Sequence record: MW812343.1
Length of the DNA: 64,000 nucleotides
Strand: one strand, 5' to 3'
Below, piece after piece: positions 3,297 through 50,188 of the stretch. Every line of letters starts with the position of its first letter. Position 1 is the stretch's first letter. Under the pieces are notes generated by a model, which made no database searches, had not been told where the DNA came from, and saw only the letters and a list, made by a program, of their open reading frames with translations. The position numbers and the translations under genes were made by a program.

Positions 3297-4608
3297 GGGT
3301 AAAACCACATTCGAGCCGGTTAAGACGGAACCCGAATACCTAACACAGCCCCAAGACGGTGTGAAGGAAAAAACCAACATCGTCACAGAGCCCACCAGAA
3401 CCACGGTAGTCGATTTAGAGCGTGTGCCCGCAGTTAACCTGTTGCCGGTCGTTGAAGGCTCCTCATGGCCGCTGCTGGCGTATTATCGTCGGTTAATGGG
3501 CAAGAACGACCCGAAGATGTTGTTCGACCCTAAACAGGATACGCCGGTACAGCAATACGACTGTATCCATTACATGGAACTGCGGGTTAACAGCCCACTT
3601 AGCCGCGACCAAGATGGCAGTAACAAGACGTTCACCATGTCGGGCAGTGCGACGATGGCCACGACGGTGGCGCCGAACGAAAACGATATCTTCACAGCGT
3701 CCCTCAAAGACAACCGTGTCGGTATCTTTAACGTCACCAGTAGCACCCGTAACTCGAATAACAAGGTCGCCACCTACACCATCGAGTACACTCTGCTCTT
3801 TGAAATGACGCCTGCCCACAAAGCCATCCTGGACAAGTGTACGGCGCACGAGTATTACTACGTCAAAGAGCGGGCGTTCACTGGCGGTGATACGCTGCTG
3901 ACTCCGAACGAGTACAACATGTTCCTCGCCTTGGGCGAGCATGTGAAAGCGATTGAGGAAACCTACTTACGCCGCTTCTTCAATGAAGATGCCCAGACGA
4001 TTCTCTTCCCAGACGATCGCTACGGGTATGCGTATGACGTGTTCTTGGCGCAGTTCGTTCGGGATATCGGTTTGCGGATGGTAGGTAAAGATGTGCGCAT
4101 CTATCCACACCCCACCAAACCGATTCGGGATATCGAAACTCTGTTCTCGGTTATCATGGCGCAGCAGCCATTGTTCCTGCAAGATGTGAACCGCAAGAAC
4201 AAAGCGTTGTCAGTCCGCTCGTTCCGTACGATGCAAACGTACAACAACGTAGGCTGGTCGAAGATTGCAGTGACCCGTTATTTCTCCGACGATGCACCCC
4301 TGCGACAGATGCCTGCCGAATGGCCGAAGTTCGATGATCTTACCAGTGAAGAAGTTTTGCTGGAAGGTACCGACGAAGCGTTGCCGGGGTTCTTGCCGTT
4401 GACTTACACCCCTTACCTACTGAGTGACGCCTTCTATTCGGGCGGTTACACCTCAGGGCTTGAGTATGCGCTACAGGCGTACCTGAACAAACAACCGGTT
4501 GCCACGAAGCTGGTACTCGATTTGGCGAAGCAGGTGCACCGCTTACCGAAGAATGCGCAGCTCTATTACGTACCGTTAATGTACGTGTTGTTGAAATACG
4601 TGAGGTAA
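3277..4608 (+). CDS. putative virion structural protein
   Basis: ATG 3277 with GAGGTG SD; coupled operon. Confidence 0.6.
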   Translation: MLQAKGKGKTTFEPVKTEPEYLTQPQDGVKEKTNIVTEPTRTTVVDLERVPAVNLLPVVEGSSWPLLAYYRRLMGKNDPKMLFDPKQDTPVQQYDCIHYMELRVNSPLSRDQDGSNKTFTMSGSATMATTVAPNENDIFTASLKDNRVGIFNVTSSTRNSNNKVATYTIEYTLLFEMTPAHKAILDKCTAHEYYYVKERAFTGGDTLLTPNEYNMFLALGEHVKAIEETYLRRFFNEDAQTILFPDDRYGYAYDVFLAQFVRDIGLRMVGKDVRIYPHPTKPIRDIETLFSVIMAQQPLFLQDVNRKNKALSVRSFRTMQTYNNVGWSKIAVTRYFSDDAPLRQMPAEWPKFDDLTSEEVLLEGTDEALPGFLPLTYTPYLLSDAFYSGGYTSGLEYALQAYLNKQPVATKLVLDLAKQVHRLPKNAQLYYVPLMYVLLKYVR

Positions 4609-42812: not shown

Positions 42813-43340
42813 ATGACTACTTTTATTGCAACCAAAGATTACCTCGCAGCAGATAGAGCCGTGTTGAAAAATCGGATGGTTTACGACGATGCCAAAGTCC
42901 GGGTTATCAAAGGCCGCATTGGATACTTCTTTGGCTCCGACCACCCGACCCCAGTGGAACGTAAGGCGTTGGAGAAACACATTTACGATTACGTCTTTGC
43001 AAAGGAACCGAAGAGACAAGCTGCTGAGGATTGGATACGGGATTTCATCGAAAGCAACACCATGGTTATCATGACCCGAAAGAAGACGTTAATCGTTGAC
43101 GGTATTTCACGGCTGGCAGCGTGGTCACCGGAGATTGGTGGGCCATCACGCCACACAGGACTGACGGTAAAAGAAGACCTGTTAGAAACTCCCATCGCGT
43201 TTGGTTCTGGCGCAGAGTTAGCCCGTGCTGGTTGGGCGTGTGGGTTGACCCCTGAGAACATCATTCTGATGGTACAGAAAATTGACCCGATGTCGGGCCA
43301 CGACTTTGACGTAATTTACAGAGAGGACTTGCGTAAATGA
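42813..43340 (+). CDS. HslV/proteasome beta-like Ntn (threonine) peptidase
   Basis: N-terminal (M)TT, LAAD, DAK, AFGSGA, D..SG. Confidence 0.75.
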   Translation: MTTFIATKDYLAADRAVLKNRMVYDDAKVRVIKGRIGYFFGSDHPTPVERKALEKHIYDYVFAKEPKRQAAEDWIRDFIESNTMVIMTRKKTLIVDGISRLAAWSPEIGGPSRHTGLTVKEDLLETPIAFGSGAELARAGWACGLTPENIILMVQKIDPMSGHDFDVIYREDLRK

Positions 43341-44612: not shown

Positions 44613-45176
44613 ATGAAATTCTGGGAGCGTTTTTGCCGCCTGTTTAAGAAAGCCCCTGAGCCGGTGTCAGACGGTGATCGTTATACCCAAATCGTCCGTG
44701 ATTATTTTAACGCAGGTAATCACAACGTGGTGGAGTTGTGTGATGCGATTGGCATGACACCCCGCCAGTTATATTTCGCAGTGAATGACGATAACGTGCG
44801 AGCGAATATTCTTCCGAGGTTGCCTGAGAAGGCGCGTACTGAACTTCGTGATGAACTCACCGCTCGCGCTTTTAGTCGCCAGCCCGTTTCTTTATTCCGC
44901 CCCACTACCGAACGCCATTCGTTCATCAACCTGAATGAACTTATGGAACATGTCCATTTGTTACACCGTGATTACCAATTAAGTAACGCGGGAAAGGATA
45001 GCGTTATCAAGGCATATATTCACTCGCTGACGCCGCGTACAGTGAGGATTGCTTTTAGTACGCCGAATCATGAATTCAACGTGGGTATTATCGAAGATAT
45101 CAACGTTGTTCAACAAAACCTGCTTATGGTGAATTATGGAAAACTTAACCCCCGTGGAAATCGTCAAAGTTTTTGA
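44613..45176 (+). CDS. hypothetical protein, possible HTH
   Basis: VVELCDAIGMTPRQLYFAV. Confidence 0.6.
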   Translation: MKFWERFCRLFKKAPEPVSDGDRYTQIVRDYFNAGNHNVVELCDAIGMTPRQLYFAVNDDNVRANILPRLPEKARTELRDELTARAFSRQPVSLFRPTTERHSFINLNELMEHVHLLHRDYQLSNAGKDSVIKAYIHSLTPRTVRIAFSTPNHEFNVGIIEDINVVQQNLLMVNYGKLNPRGNRQSF

Positions 45177-46881
45177 CCGATTTGTTCATGGTCAAACATT
45201 GGCGAAGAAGATGTTGGCGATAGCGTTACGTAACCGCGTACGGGTAGCGATGCTTCCCCTCGGTGAACGCAACAGTGTTCGCAAACAGAATCTTCTGTTA
45301 CTGGGGCCTACGGGCTCCGGTAAGACGGCTTTAATGCGTGTGCTGAAAACCCAATTCGGTTTGCCGGTATTAGAGCTGGACATGACCGGGTTTTCTGAAA
45401 CAGGCTACGTGGGCCGTAACCTCAACACTGTGGGGACGGATTTACAAACCTTGACCCGTAGTGTCAGTTTGCCGGATTGGTACGTGGAGATGCGTACGGG
45501 AATGACGCTGGAGAAAGATGAACAGCGTTATACGCGCGACGAACTTGAGGCACTGAAAGCCAAAGAGTACGAAGCGGAAAGTGCGGCTAAGCAGGCAGTG
45601 TGGAAAGCAGGCCGTGAAGCGAAAGAGAACCACGAAGCGCTGTTGAAGAACATGGGCGTATTCCCAGACGATAATACCTACAACCATTATCGCATGGTCT
45701 ACTACATGCGTGCGTTTTTGGTCGGATATCACGCCATGAAGAATCTCCCATACGACGTCATCGACTTTGCTGATATTGAAATGCTTCCGGGTCAGAGGCT
45801 CATCGATGTCGCTAAGAAAGTTGTCGAGTTGTTTGAGAAGATGATCGGTAAACCGGTTACCAGTATCGACGATTTGAAAGACGACAACGTCGAAGATGGC
45901 GTTGAGGAGATGATGGAGAACAACCCTGCGTTATTGGGTGAGTTCATGAGTCTGATGGCTTACAAAGAGATTCTTGAAATCACTCTGCAACAGGGCATCG
46001 ACATGCTCAGCAGCAATCCGCCTGCCGCTTGCGTTTCCTCAAGCGATTGGTACGACGTCGCACATAGCTTTGAAGAAGCCGATGAAGAGAAGATACCGCC
46101 GGGCATCGCGTGGCGTAATCTGGACTTCTCTGAGTTCGCACTCTATATCTGCATCATGTTGGTACGCGACCCTGAAGGGTTGGAGGAGGTCTTCGAAGAT
46201 TGTGAAGACTTCACCCGTTTCGCTGACGAGAAGCTCTGGGCTTACACCGTACCTACTGTAGAACCTGTAGTGCCTAAGGGCAAACGTAATGTCCTCGCGA
46301 AGAAAGACCTTGATAAAGTTGCCAACTGTAATGGGCGGGACTTTGTTGAGAACTTCGGAGTGGTGTTCATGGATGAGATTGACAAGCTCATTGAAACGGA
46401 CACCACGGGACGTACGCATGTTTCTCGCAGTGGCGTGCAGCGTAGTTTGCTGAAGATGGTCGAGGGTGGGTTGTACTCAGGGATTGATACCACGAATATC
46501 TTGTTCGTCGGTGCCGGTTCCTTTGCCGAAGCCCCGGTCACTAAACTGATGCCGGAACTGCAAGGTCGCTTTACACTCCGAGCAGAACTGGAACCGCTGG
46601 ATAAGGAAGCGTTGGTATCCATCTGTCGAATGGACAGCAGTGAGTTCCATGCAATGGTGCGTCTCTTGCGAATCGAAAAGGTTGACGTCAAATACGACAT
46701 TGACACATTCGAGTACATCGCAGAGAAAACCCTCGAAGCGAACGCTGTCGATAACCTCGGCGCACGCCGCTTGGCTGCCATTGTTGAGGCGCTGTTCCAG
46801 GATGCGCTGTATGAACCTAACAAATATACAACGTCGGGGTATGATCTGACCGGCCAAACCTTGAGGAAAAAGGATGCTTGA
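45136..46881 (+). CDS. hslU: HslU (ClpY) AAA+ unfoldase
   Basis: HGQ..AK...AIALRNR, LGPTGSGKT, ETGYVG, VFMDEIDK, SR.GVQR.LL, MPELQGRF, NLGARRL. Confidence 0.93.
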   Translation: MENLTPVEIVKVFDRFVHGQTLAKKMLAIALRNRVRVAMLPLGERNSVRKQNLLLLGPTGSGKTALMRVLKTQFGLPVLELDMTGFSETGYVGRNLNTVGTDLQTLTRSVSLPDWYVEMRTGMTLEKDEQRYTRDELEALKAKEYEAESAAKQAVWKAGREAKENHEALLKNMGVFPDDNTYNHYRMVYYMRAFLVGYHAMKNLPYDVIDFADIEMLPGQRLIDVAKKVVELFEKMIGKPVTSIDDLKDDNVEDGVEEMMENNPALLGEFMSLMAYKEILEITLQQGIDMLSSNPPAACVSSSDWYDVAHSFEEADEEKIPPGIAWRNLDFSEFALYICIMLVRDPEGLEEVFEDCEDFTRFADEKLWAYTVPTVEPVVPKGKRNVLAKKDLDKVANCNGRDFVENFGVVFMDEIDKLIETDTTGRTHVSRSGVQRSLLKMVEGGLYSGIDTTNILFVGAGSFAEAPVTKLMPELQGRFTLRAELEPLDKEALVSICRMDSSEFHAMVRLLRIEKVDVKYDIDTFEYIAEKTLEANAVDNLGARRLAAIVEALFQDALYEPNKYTTSGYDLTGQTLRKKDA

Positions 46882-47071
46882 TTTTATCGTCTCCATCATT
46901 GTCATCGTGATGGCTCTTAGCATGTTAGGTAGTTGGATTGGGCGTATGTCAGTACGGCGTAATTGGTCATTCCCCCTCATGTTAGTTGTGGCACTCGTAC
47001 TCGGTGGGTTTATCGGTAATGTCTATTTCAGCGCGGTGGTCATCCCGCTGTATAACAACATCGGAGGATAA
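46874..47071 (+). CDS. small two-TM membrane protein
   Basis: Two hydrophobic segments; AGGA SD. Confidence 0.7.
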   Translation: MLDFIVSIIVIVMALSMLGSWIGRMSVRRNWSFPLMLVVALVLGGFIGNVYFSAVVIPLYNNIGG

Positions 47072-47074
47072 CGC

Positions 47075-47803
47075 GTGGAAACCGACAAGTACAAGATGCG
47101 TGTAGAGAAAGTCCGCAAATCCTACACGCAAGCTGGGAAGACCGTGAATGAGGGTAGCATTCACGCATCAGGGCAGGTGTTGTGCCTGCCGAAAACGGCG
47201 TTTGTGGACGGTGCAGATTGGCAGCAGATATTTCGTCGTTGGCTAAACTGCACTGCCCGTTGTGAAACATCGCCGGTACGCCACGCTAATCACCAATATC
47301 CCGAATCTATCTTCCGTACCTCGAAGATTCAGGAGGAGCGTGTTTGTGCGACGTTGTTAGGTGGCAGTATGGATGTGAATGGCGACTACGTCACGCTTAC
47401 CACCAACGTGGTGCCCTATGGCCCTTACGGCGATAAGTTAGCGACGTACATGCGTGAGCAACAAGAGCTGATCATCGTTCCGCGCTTCATTCTGGACAAA
47501 GACGGTAAAATCACCGGCGTACCTGCATGGGATCTGGATTTGCCGTCAGGCTGGGACATCGTCCCGTACGAGTACAATGACGTACAGGATGAAGTCTTCG
47601 TCGGCGAGCTTGCTTATCTCATCGAAAAGTGCAAAGCTCACAGCCTCAATTGGGCGATGCACTATTCCGATACGGACGACCTCTGGCGTTTCACGCTGTC
47701 GACTTACCACGCGGTGGTTTGCTTCGATGGTGACTGGAAAAAGTTATGCGATGCGGTGGAAGATGCCACTGCGTATTTTGACGGCTTAGATAATCATGGA
47801 TAA
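47075..47803 (+). CDS. prohead-protease-like (T4 gp21/phiKZ gp175 fold) paralog, catalytic motifs degenerate
   Basis: RCETSP, I.EERVCATL, V.PYGPYG..L, VPR, AWDL. Confidence 0.5.
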   Translation: METDKYKMRVEKVRKSYTQAGKTVNEGSIHASGQVLCLPKTAFVDGADWQQIFRRWLNCTARCETSPVRHANHQYPESIFRTSKIQEERVCATLLGGSMDVNGDYVTLTTNVVPYGPYGDKLATYMREQQELIIVPRFILDKDGKITGVPAWDLDLPSGWDIVPYEYNDVQDEVFVGELAYLIEKCKAHSLNWAMHYSDTDDLWRFTLSTYHAVVCFDGDWKKLCDAVEDATAYFDGLDNHG

Positions 47804-48278
47804 GAACATGGACAAGAAAGAACGTAATCTGATCGAAATCACAGGTAAAGGCGAAGACAGCAACGGCAAGTTTTACTCGGTGGTGCTGTTAGACCAAACT
47901 AAGATGAATGCAGGTGGACGTCAATACACCGGCGACATCGCACATCTGGTTCGTGGTATCAAACGTATGCCACGTCTGTTCTGTGAAGTCGACCCGTACC
48001 ATGACTACCGTTTTCAGTTCCCGGTAACGGATGACCGCAGTGTGTCTGGGCCATGCACGGTAGAAATGAAAAACGTGTGTGCTTCTATCGAGAACATTCG
48101 TCACGATAAGATGAACCAGCGTGTGTCAGCGGAACTGCGTCCGTGGGGCCCACAAGCTGCAATGGTGCGTAATCTGCTGGATGGTGCAAACCAAAACGTG
48201 ACCTTCGGGATGCGCGCGCTGGCAACCCCTGACGGTAAAATCGACAAAGTCATCACATGGGACCTGTTACCAGAATGA
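47796..48278 (+). CDS. prohead-protease-like paralog, catalytic motifs degenerate
   Basis: NAGGRQY, FCEVDP, V.MKNVCASI, LRPWGPQA...LL, FGMRAL, VITWDL. Confidence 0.55.
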   Translation: MDKNMDKKERNLIEITGKGEDSNGKFYSVVLLDQTKMNAGGRQYTGDIAHLVRGIKRMPRLFCEVDPYHDYRFQFPVTDDRSVSGPCTVEMKNVCASIENIRHDKMNQRVSAELRPWGPQAAMVRNLLDGANQNVTFGMRALATPDGKIDKVITWDLLPE

Positions 48279-48475
48279 ATGTACCCGACCTGTTTTACTG
48301 GTGTGTCATGGTGTTAAGTGGTTTCTTCCTTATCCAGTGTGTCATTGGCACGGTTAAGGATTTAATGAAAGGCGAATTGATAGGCGCGTTCGTCGAGTTA
48401 GTGTTTGCTGTCCTCGCATGGAACATTCACCGTTGGGCGTTTGTTCATTTGGTACCATTGCAAACACTGTTCTAA
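48275..48475 (+). CDS. small two-TM membrane protein
   Basis: ATGA-coupled, hydrophobic. Confidence 0.65.
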   Translation: MNVPDLFYWCVMVLSGFFLIQCVIGTVKDLMKGELIGAFVELVFAVLAWNIHRWAFVHLVPLQTLF

Positions 48476-48581: not shown

Positions 48582-48758
48582 ATGGATAAAATTTATATCG
48601 TTACAGCAGTTCTCTTCACCGTCGCTTGCTTACTGAGCTGGCGCGTATCTTCTAACATGAAACGTCGTAAGTGCCCACCGGGTGCCATTGCGTTTGGTGT
48701 TCAAGCCTGTGTTTACGGTTTCGTTGCCGTGTTCACCGGTGCGAAGTATTTCTTCTAG
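48582..48758 (+). CDS. 58-aa two-TM protein (not in ORF track)
   Basis: MDKIYIVTAVLFTVACLLSWRVSSNMKRRKCPPGAIAFGVQACVYGFVAVFTGAKYFF; AAGGAG SD; own promoter and terminator. Confidence 0.8.
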   Translation: MDKIYIVTAVLFTVACLLSWRVSSNMKRRKCPPGAIAFGVQACVYGFVAVFTGAKYFF

Positions 48759-48816: not shown

Positions 48817-49884
48817 ATGGCACGTCTGTTAGCATTTACTGGCGGGTTGGATTCTACGTGGGTGTTGAATAAGTTAATCAGCCAACCTGCGTCAGATGGT
48901 GGTGAGGTTATCCATCCTGTTTACATGGATTTTTATCAAGGTTCTCCAGCGGCGTTGGTCGAATTTATTCTCGGTAGTGAAATCGCCCTACGTCTGCTCA
49001 AACACAACAAAGACCACTACAGAGAACCCCTGCTGTGGTTGTCACCACCACATGGTCTGTTTACCTCGGCCATTATCGGGCGTTCGGGTGCTGGCGAGTC
49101 GCGTCTCATCCAGCAGGGAAACACGGTCTTAGGGTTGGCGCACATGATGAACCCGATTCAGGCTCGTCACCCCGGCTCAACGGCATTGACTGGTTGGAAC
49201 AAGGCAGACTTCATTGAAAACAGCGCCTTACAAGGCGAGTGGTCGGAAGAAGATTATCTGCGCCTGAAGAAAGTCTATAGTGAGTTGATGTTCTTCCAAG
49301 ACCATCACTACCGTTGCTCTCCGTTACTCACACCTGCGTGGGATATGGAGAAGAAGGACATGTGGGATCAGCTTCCCGCTGATGTGCAGGAATTGATTAC
49401 GGTCTGCTCGACGTATATGTTCAAGTTCTTCCACATCAAATCTGAAAATGCGATTTATATCGCGTGCAACCCGGAACACTTCGGTAAATCGCTGCGTTAT
49501 CTCAAACGGGGTATTAACTTGTCTGCTGGTTGGCGGATTGCAATTGATGAAGAGTTCAAACGTCGTGTCTTCACAGAAAACTTACCCGGTAACTATTTCG
49601 CCGGGTCTTTCCCGGACGGTATACTGCCTACCGGCGACGAGAAGAAGAATCTCCCCAGCTTGCGAATGACCTCAGACGCAGCCAATCTGCAAATTGAAGC
49701 TTACAGCGTCGAGGAGTGGAAGGTTAAGTTGGAACACGTAGAACAGATGCTAAAGGTGGAACGTGAACGAGAACAAGCCGAGTACCGCGCCCAGCGAGAA
49801 AAAGAAAAGGCTGATAATCCGGACGCTGCAAATAGCGAAGTGGCGAAAGGCGAAGTCGCCGTATCCGGCAGTACCGCTGGTTGA
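48817..49884 (+). CDS. QueC-like PP-loop ATPase
   Basis: AFTGGLDST, IHPVYMDFYQ, TGWNKADF, LTPAWDMEK..MW, ITVCS match QueC order; Zn cluster incomplete. Confidence 0.7.
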   Translation: MARLLAFTGGLDSTWVLNKLISQPASDGGEVIHPVYMDFYQGSPAALVEFILGSEIALRLLKHNKDHYREPLLWLSPPHGLFTSAIIGRSGAGESRLIQQGNTVLGLAHMMNPIQARHPGSTALTGWNKADFIENSALQGEWSEEDYLRLKKVYSELMFFQDHHYRCSPLLTPAWDMEKKDMWDQLPADVQELITVCSTYMFKFFHIKSENAIYIACNPEHFGKSLRYLKRGINLSAGWRIAIDEEFKRRVFTENLPGNYFAGSFPDGILPTGDEKKNLPSLRMTSDAANLQIEAYSVEEWKVKLEHVEQMLKVEREREQAEYRAQREKEKADNPDAANSEVAKGEVAVSGSTAG

Positions 49885-50188
49885 TGTTACTGTTAAATCA
49901 GGTATCAAGGCGTTAGCGCCAACATGGGACTTTTTGATGGAGTACAAAAACTCCGATAAAGGTCCCGAGGCAGAAGACGCTTATACCAAAAAATATAAAA
50001 GCAGAATCCAACAACTCAAACAGGATGACCCTGATGTGATGTTGGAGCTGCTGTATCAGGAAGAGATTATCCTGATGTGCTATTGCCCAGCCGGGAAGTT
50101 TTGTCACCGGCTTTTATTAGTTGATGAGTTCTTCGCATTGGGTGAAGACCACGGTATCGAAGTAATCTACGAAGGAGAAATAGCGTGA
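49763..50188 (+). CDS. DUF488-like protein
   Basis: D.TVKSG, LAPTWD, ILMCYC...FCHR; start uncertain, inside the previous gene. Confidence 0.7.
   Translation: MNENKPSTAPSEKKKRLIIRTLQIAKWRKAKSPYPAVPLVDVTVKSGIKALAPTWDFLMEYKNSDKGPEAEDAYTKKYKSRIQQLKQDDPDVMLELLYQEEIILMCYCPAGKFCHRLLLVDEFFALGEDHGIEVIYEGEIA

Follow-up and report, generated by a model that had tools for sequence, protein, structure and literature searches.

The closest described relatives of the two genes analyzed here come from the phage SPN3US, in which gp117 was identified as a 'diverged homolog to the prohead protease' and presented as an unprecedented prohead-protease paralog, with homologs listed for Erwinia phages, 201phi2-1 and PhiPA3, and with Machina, Caitlin and ChrisDB noted to have two each (Ali et al. 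2017, Front Microbiol 8:2251, PMC5694885). Both the gene family and its double copy have therefore been known since 2017 (Ali et al.), and in the literature after that year we found no function for gp117-type paralogs. The real SPN3US protease is gp245, whose H77, S153 and D178 align with the T4 gp21 triad, and whose C-terminal propeptide is auto-cleaved and was inferred to direct gp245 to the prohead (PMC5694885). The S153A substitution abolishes auto-cleavage of gp245 (PMC7411985), and the serine is therefore essential in the S80 protease family.

Here we analyze two adjacent genes, ORF1 and ORF2, of the Erwinia jumbo phage pEa_SNUABM_6 (Machinavirus; MW812343.1, 240,164 bp). The window, which is the whole stretch of 64,000 nucleotides that was analyzed, is numbered such that a window coordinate is the MW812343.1 coordinate minus 62,000. 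Like gp117, both ORFs are short, have no C-terminal propeptide, are extra to a real protease encoded elsewhere in the genome, and are located 5′ of QueC-like and DUF488 genes within the same syntenic block. For ORF1, gp117 is the reciprocal-type relative (blastp 1.4e-8), and the two share one clade (96/93). Unlike ORF1 and ORF2, gp117 keeps the catalytic serine (Ser126); it keeps Asp144 too, as both ORFs keep theirs, and has an alanine at the His column (as PMC5694885 reports); it also lacks the extra C-terminal domain of ORF1, and the SPN3US paralog has no HslU-like neighbor, unlike its counterparts in pEa_SNUABM_6. The loss of the serine relative to gp117 is a difference within the family and no ground for excluding either ORF from the gp117-type paralogs.

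Measured against the real S80 enzymes (phiKZ gp175, SPN3US gp245 and the phage's own S80 copy), the fold and family are common, and the E..P, NV(C)A and P.GP motifs, the S-x-R arginine and (F/W)D are shared, but those enzymes combine a His-Ser-Asp triad with a C-terminal propeptide of ∼60 residues that is cut off at A-x-E, whereas ORF1 and ORF2 have neither. Sequence identity to T4 gp21 (5JBL) and herpesvirus assemblin, the best structural match, is 10–12% in VIA alignments, and the catalytic Ser and His of those enzymes are absent from both ORFs. What this locus adds to the earlier description is modest: the Ser and His are both lost under strong selection, the pair has a two-lineage structure, and ORF1 has an extra domain. 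It is unusual for a virus to carry pseudoenzyme copies of its own maturation protease, and one of the two lineages has gained a dsRBD-like domain that resembles the protein-interaction type.

Results

The gene pair sits in a block of genes on one strand, of which the following features are needed here:

42813..43340, + strand: HslV-like protein, 175 aa, beginning MTTF; matches PHROG 1040 (E=1.1e-12) and heads the same-strand block
45136..46881, + strand: HslU-like AAA+ unfoldase, 581 aa, assigned by HslU sequence matches; upstream of ORF1
46874..47071, + strand: predicted two-pass membrane protein, 65 aa, between the HslU-like gene and ORF1
47075..47803, + strand: ORF1, 242 aa, type-1 prohead-protease paralog of the SPN3US gp117 lineage
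47075..47554, + strand: protease-fold domain of ORF1 (residues 1–160), from the VIA match to gp21 and the column table
47582..47800, + strand: C-terminal domain of ORF1 (residues ∼170–242), dsRBD-like alpha-beta-beta-beta-alpha fold in the AlphaFold2 model
47808..48278, + strand: ORF2, 156 aa, type-2 prohead-protease paralog
48275..48475, + strand: hydrophobic small protein, 66 aa, overlapping the ORF2 stop

ORF1 and ORF2 correspond to the GenBank CDSs pEaSNUABM6_00135 and pEaSNUABM6_00136, and lie on the + strand at the coordinates that the original prediction had given for them; the motifs that it quoted (CETSP/CEVDP, NVCA, P.GP, IVPR/FGMR and AWD/TWD) are all found as written. ORF1 starts with a GTG located 6–7 nt 3′ of a GGAGGA ribosome-binding site, which the stop of the 65-aa membrane protein gene overlaps. 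The most likely start of ORF2 is at 47808, with a possible alternative ATG at 47796 that would extend the protein to 160 aa and that overlaps the ORF1 stop in the arrangement ATGGATAA.

The names given to these genes differ between records. MW812343.1 names both 'hypothetical protein', while pEa_SNUABM_43, a close relative, has them as 'putative prohead core protein protease'. RefSeq (NC_031127, NC_042056, NC_027402, NC_031126 and others) and PHROG 7478 call the short paralogs 'head maturation protease'. Since the real S80 protease is a separate gene in each genome, this label is probably an over-annotation, and one that will probably spread. In pEa_SNUABM_6 the S80 protease encoded outside the window is full-length (268 aa, 283.6 bits), and its triad H78/S154/D179 corresponds to H77/S153/D178 of SPN3US gp245:

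record positions 219832–220521 of MW812343.1: real S80 protease, ∼110 kb from ORF1 and ORF2

Sequence profiles and structure comparison both connect the pair to this enzyme family. ORF2 matches the Pfam family PF20034 (Peptidase_S80) with E=3.8e-7 and 30 bits, above the gathering cut-off of 23.4, over profile positions 88–175 of 229 only. ORF1 gives no Pfam match over the whole protein, C-terminal domain included, and is tied to the S80 family by PHROG 7478 (E=2.4e-17, with E=1.9e-53 for ORF2) and by a profile built from the paralogs, which recovers phiKZ gp175 at 1.6e-10 and 201phi2-1 gp268 at 5.7e-10. NCBIfam and PADLOC gave no match for either ORF. Relatives were few in a word-based protein search (12 with ORF2 as query, 2 with ORF1), and a scan of IMG/VR with ORF1 found none.

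The AlphaFold2 models of ORF1 and ORF2 have mean pLDDT values of 78 and 83, and the best match of both, by Foldseek and then by VIA-align, is T4 gp21 (5JBL). Residues 1–158 of the ORF1 model align to 5jbl_C with a VIA-align Z of 10.8 (133 residues, rmsd 3.3), and the ORF2 model aligns to 5JBL with a VIA-align Z of 10.7 (133 residues, rmsd 3.1). The next matches are herpesvirus proteases at Z 3.6–5.4, a range in which unrelated folds also appear, near Z 5. Neither ORF, nor the paralog profile, found anything meaningful in searches of PDB sequences, such that gp21 is seen by structure comparison only. Among nucleus-forming jumbo phages, short protease-fold proteins match the ORF2 model in Foldseek with E values of 1e-4 to 1e-7 at very low sequence identity; these are 201phi2-1 gp206 and a 125-aa ORF, and proteins of Phabio, Miami, RAY, Psa21 and Eowyn. 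ORF1 and ORF2 are homologous to prohead proteases, far beyond chance. The homology that had been claimed from sequence motifs is borne out by PF20034 for ORF2, by PHROG 7478, by the paralog profile and by the gp21 match, and the fold comparison with gp21, named beforehand as the check that could overturn the claim, came out in its favor at Z 10.7–10.8.

To read the catalytic positions, we used a column alignment of 16 proteins, consisting of 3 real proteases (the pEa_SNUABM_6 S80 protease, phiKZ gp175 and 201phi2-1 gp268) and 13 paralogs. At the His column, ORF1 (CETS-P) and ORF2 (CEVD-P) both have a one-residue deletion, while the Ser column is occupied by Val135 in ORF1 (47477–47479) and by Gly138 in ORF2 (48207–48209; 160-aa numbering). 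The arginine of S-x-R is retained (Arg137 in ORF1, Arg140 in ORF2), as is the triad Asp (Asp153 at 47531–47533 in ORF1, Asp156 at 48261–48263 in ORF2), and these two columns are invariant in 16/16 aligned proteins. The ORF2 family has 32 invariant columns, and its FGMRA motif, which places Gly at the Ser column, is invariant in 13/13 ORF2-type proteins. The alignment thus agrees for both ORFs with the predicted absence of the canonical His and Ser, and it makes the view that neither is catalytic by the canonical route well supported. Near the deleted column, the paralogs have a conserved Cys63 where the real enzymes have Gly or Met, and a histidine follows 2–3 residues past the His column (His69 in ORF2, His70 and His73 in ORF1), of which His69 is invariant within the close ORF2 family.

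Other members of the family have different residues at these columns. Asesino and phiEaH2-type copies have Glu at the His column and Ala at the Ser column, and in 201phi2-1 gp206 these two positions are Glu and Lys, with the Arg and Asp kept. The upstream copy of SPAsTU (L006:2034–2519, 161 aa), a type-1 protein encoded 5′ of the HslU-like gene, has the full triad H56/S124/D142, and with all three triad residues in place this copy may act as a second protease. Judged by these residues, the family ranges from intact through partly to fully degenerate members, in a graded loss from the full triad (SPAsTU) through Ser and Asp (SPN3US gp117) to Asp only (pEa_SNUABM_6).

The C-terminal ends of the two proteins also set them apart from the real enzymes. 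ORF2 terminates four residues past the Asp, the C-terminal propeptide is absent from both ORFs, and the A-x-E sites in ORF1 amount to one AVE at residue 227, inside the unrelated C-terminal domain. The model of this domain matches DCL4, TARBP2 D3 and Loqs D3 with Z values of 7.7–8.8, which are near background for small folds, and a comparison with the ESM Atlas gave no informative match. The ChrisDB, Caitlin and L010 homologs of the domain do not conserve the KK ahead of helix 2 that corresponds to the dsRNA-contact lysines. In appearance the domain resembles dsRBDs of the protein-interaction type (TARBP2 D3, Loqs D3 and Staufen D5) and also T7 Gp1.2. In the metagenomic relative L010 it forms a free-standing 91-aa ORF (3739–4014) directly 5′ of an ORF2 homolog.

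Despite their lost catalytic residues, both genes are kept. In comparisons with pEa_SNUABM_43 and Huxley, dN/dS is 0.03 for ORF2 and 0.08 for ORF1, with dS above 1, and it is 0.075 for the adjoining HslU-like gene. The reading frames are intact in all relatives. ORF1 and ORF2 are under purifying selection and are functional genes.

A maximum-likelihood tree places ORF1, gp117, the SPAsTU upstream copy and 201phi2-1 gp206 in a type-1 clade (96/93), and ORF2, the SPAsTU downstream copy, Asesino and phiEaH2 in a type-2 clade (96/94), with both lineages older than the split between Seoulvirus and Machinavirus. Because the tree splits them into two clades, ORF1 and ORF2 are best read as two old lineages that now lie side by side, not as a recent tandem duplication. 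The description of the pair as tandem paralogs downstream of HslU accordingly stands in that the paralogs adjoin and the HslU-like gene is upstream, and fails in so far as it implies a recent tandem duplication.

The two lineages vary in their presence among relatives. ORF1 is absent from Huxley, Parshik and pSal-SNUABM-04, and Huxley has HslU and ORF2 with ORF1 missing. Between Machina (L005) and pEa_SNUABM_6, ORF1 is 44% and ORF2 56% identical, while the flanking genes are 80–94% identical; the low identity of the ORF1–ORF2 cassette suggests either cassette exchange or fast evolution. Farther afield, 201phi2-1 (EU197055) has two short paralogs (138192–138596 and 140168–140311), while searches of phiKZ (NC_004629) with Pfam S80 and with the paralog profile detected gp175 only and no paralog. 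The paralogs are therefore not universal in nucleus-forming jumbo phages, and transposon-mutagenesis data from phiKZ are for the same reason uninformative about them.

The HslU-like gene upstream of the pair matches solved HslU with E=5.7e-47 and TIGR00390 with E=1.1e-58, at 199 bits, which is under the equivalog cut-off of 362. The encoded ATPase aligns with solved HslU or ClpX over residues ∼5–100 and ∼395–575 only, and between these regions is an insertion of ∼300 residues without a match. The C-terminus of the ATPase (…TLRKKDA) does not resemble that of solved HslU and is shorter. The HslV-like protein gave no NCBIfam match and no PDB sequence match, and its assignment comes from one PHROG match. 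The 'proteostasis island' with HslUV that had been proposed is thus only loosely supported, as the HslU-like component is clear and the HslV-like component is that single match. A 187-aa gene upstream of HslU was considered as a third paralog and rejected, as the paralog HMM gives no match to it.

In SPAsTU, HslU is flanked by its two paralogs. In the SPN3US and phiEaH2 genomes, a paralog is present and an HslU-like gene is absent genome-wide, and the link between paralog and HslU is not obligate. On the 3′ side of the pair (48817–50188) are genes for a 355-aa QueC-like protein and a DUF488-N3a protein, and the same QueC-like and DUF488 genes follow gp117 and gp118 in SPN3US. By gene order, the block is syntenic across the clade.

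Discussion

We consider ORF1 and ORF2 to be non-catalytic S80 paralogs that are probably cytoplasmic binders, as opposed to cutters or parts of the virion. The pseudoprotease reading of the original prediction holds as the best reading, in that the fold is kept, the canonical His and Ser are gone, and the genes are kept by selection. With the Ser nucleophile replaced (by Val or Gly) and the general-base His deleted, the proteins would not be expected to cut, and lacking a propeptide they would not be expected to be packaged. As they have neither the residues for cleavage nor the propeptide for targeting, they are most likely cytoplasmic binders. We infer that binding in place of cleavage, and exclusion from the virion, are each the most likely state of these proteins. 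Binding could proceed through the preserved cleft or through an oligomer surface, and the dsRBD-like domain of ORF1 would be of the protein-interaction type. Candidate partners include peptides resembling protease substrates and the real protease, and a partner with no connection to heads is a further candidate. The binding of A-x-E propeptides that the original prediction proposed would be a putative role.

Data on virions bear on this explanation from both sides. [quoted passage not shown] Against the explanation, some records name ORF2-type homologs (Machina gp131 and SPAsTU) 'virion structural protein', and the conserved Cys63 with its nearby His leaves room for an unconventional active site. 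A complex prediction for ORF1 with ORF2 returned a score of 0.00, which counts neither for nor against it.

Among the alternatives, one, already put forward in the original prediction, would keep the paralogs in head assembly as an inhibitor or timer: a dead paralog would pair with the S80 protease or mask A-x-E sites before prohead entry, and would thereby time head maturation. Herpesvirus members of the enzyme family with this fold are active as dimers. The paralogs have the fold of that family with its dimeric herpesvirus members, they keep an Arg and an Asp in the active-site region, and the targeting propeptide is missing from them, all of which would suit such pairing; a link to protease evolution was also raised in the 2017 paper (PMC5694885). 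However, the genes lie in a non-structural block, with the protease and head genes ∼110 kb away, Huxley-type relatives manage without ORF1, and the phiKZ protease works without a detectable paralog, and we regard this alternative as possible but rather unlikely. With similarly tentative standing, one can picture the dead paralogs as a head-maturation control layer in nucleus-forming jumbo phages, in which a cytoplasmic 'substrate-trap' would hold A-x-E head or ejection proteins, or the protease, until the prohead assembles, and the dsRBD-like module of ORF1 would recruit a further partner.

The variable presence of ORF1 among close relatives raises the question of whether the paralogs act outside head assembly, for example as a binder or decoy in host interaction or counter-defense that is built on a recycled protease fold. 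The Machina cassette, with its 44% and 56% identity beside flanks at 80–94%, fits such a role, as do the non-structural surroundings, which comprise HslU/HslV-like, QueC-like, DUF488 and small membrane proteins. We know of no immune sensor of prohead proteases. Since neither ORF matches a known defense or anti-defense family, and since the invariant Arg and Asp suggest that the ancestral peptide-binding site still matters, we give a role outside head assembly a somewhat smaller chance than one in timing.

It is improbable that the paralogs serve HslU, either as adaptors that deliver proteins to the HslU-like unfoldase or as substrates that it handles. What speaks for this is position: the pair directly adjoins the HslU-like gene in Machinavirus, the SPAsTU paralogs flank HslU, and the genes are tightly packed on the same strand. 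However, the whole block is syntenic in the clade, so adjacency carries little weight, and SPN3US and phiEaH2 have a paralog with no HslU-like gene anywhere in the genome. The adaptor role that had been suggested for the pair is weakened by these two genomes, and also by Huxley, which has HslU and ORF2 without ORF1.

A marginally poorer prospect is that the proteins are still active peptidases with an alternative nucleophile and base, such as Cys63/His69/Asp156. Cys63 is nearly universal in the paralogs, the Asp and, in the close ORF2 family, His69 are invariant, and some relatives keep either the full triad (the SPAsTU upstream copy) or Ser and Asp (SPN3US gp117). But the His is absent in the Asesino/phiEaH2-type homologs of ORF2 and in the ChrisDB and Caitlin homologs of ORF1, ChrisDB ORF1 is also without Cys63, and the position of Cys63, on the strand of the His column and four residues ahead of it, is not that of the nucleophile. 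That both genes are decaying, functionless relics of a protease gene duplication, as their shortened length and lost catalytic residues might suggest, is hardly credible and effectively refuted by purifying selection, with frames intact in all relatives, dN/dS of 0.03–0.08 at dS above 1, 32 invariant columns in the ORF2 family, and lineages that predate the split between Seoulvirus and Machinavirus.

Apart from the paralogs, the locus is marked by small hydrophobic ORFs. Three of them (58–66 aa; 46874–47071, 48275–48475 and 48582–48758) flank ORF1 and ORF2, each with two likely membrane helices, and a similar small ORF is found before gp117 in SPN3US, while in SPAsTU one separates HslU from the downstream paralog.
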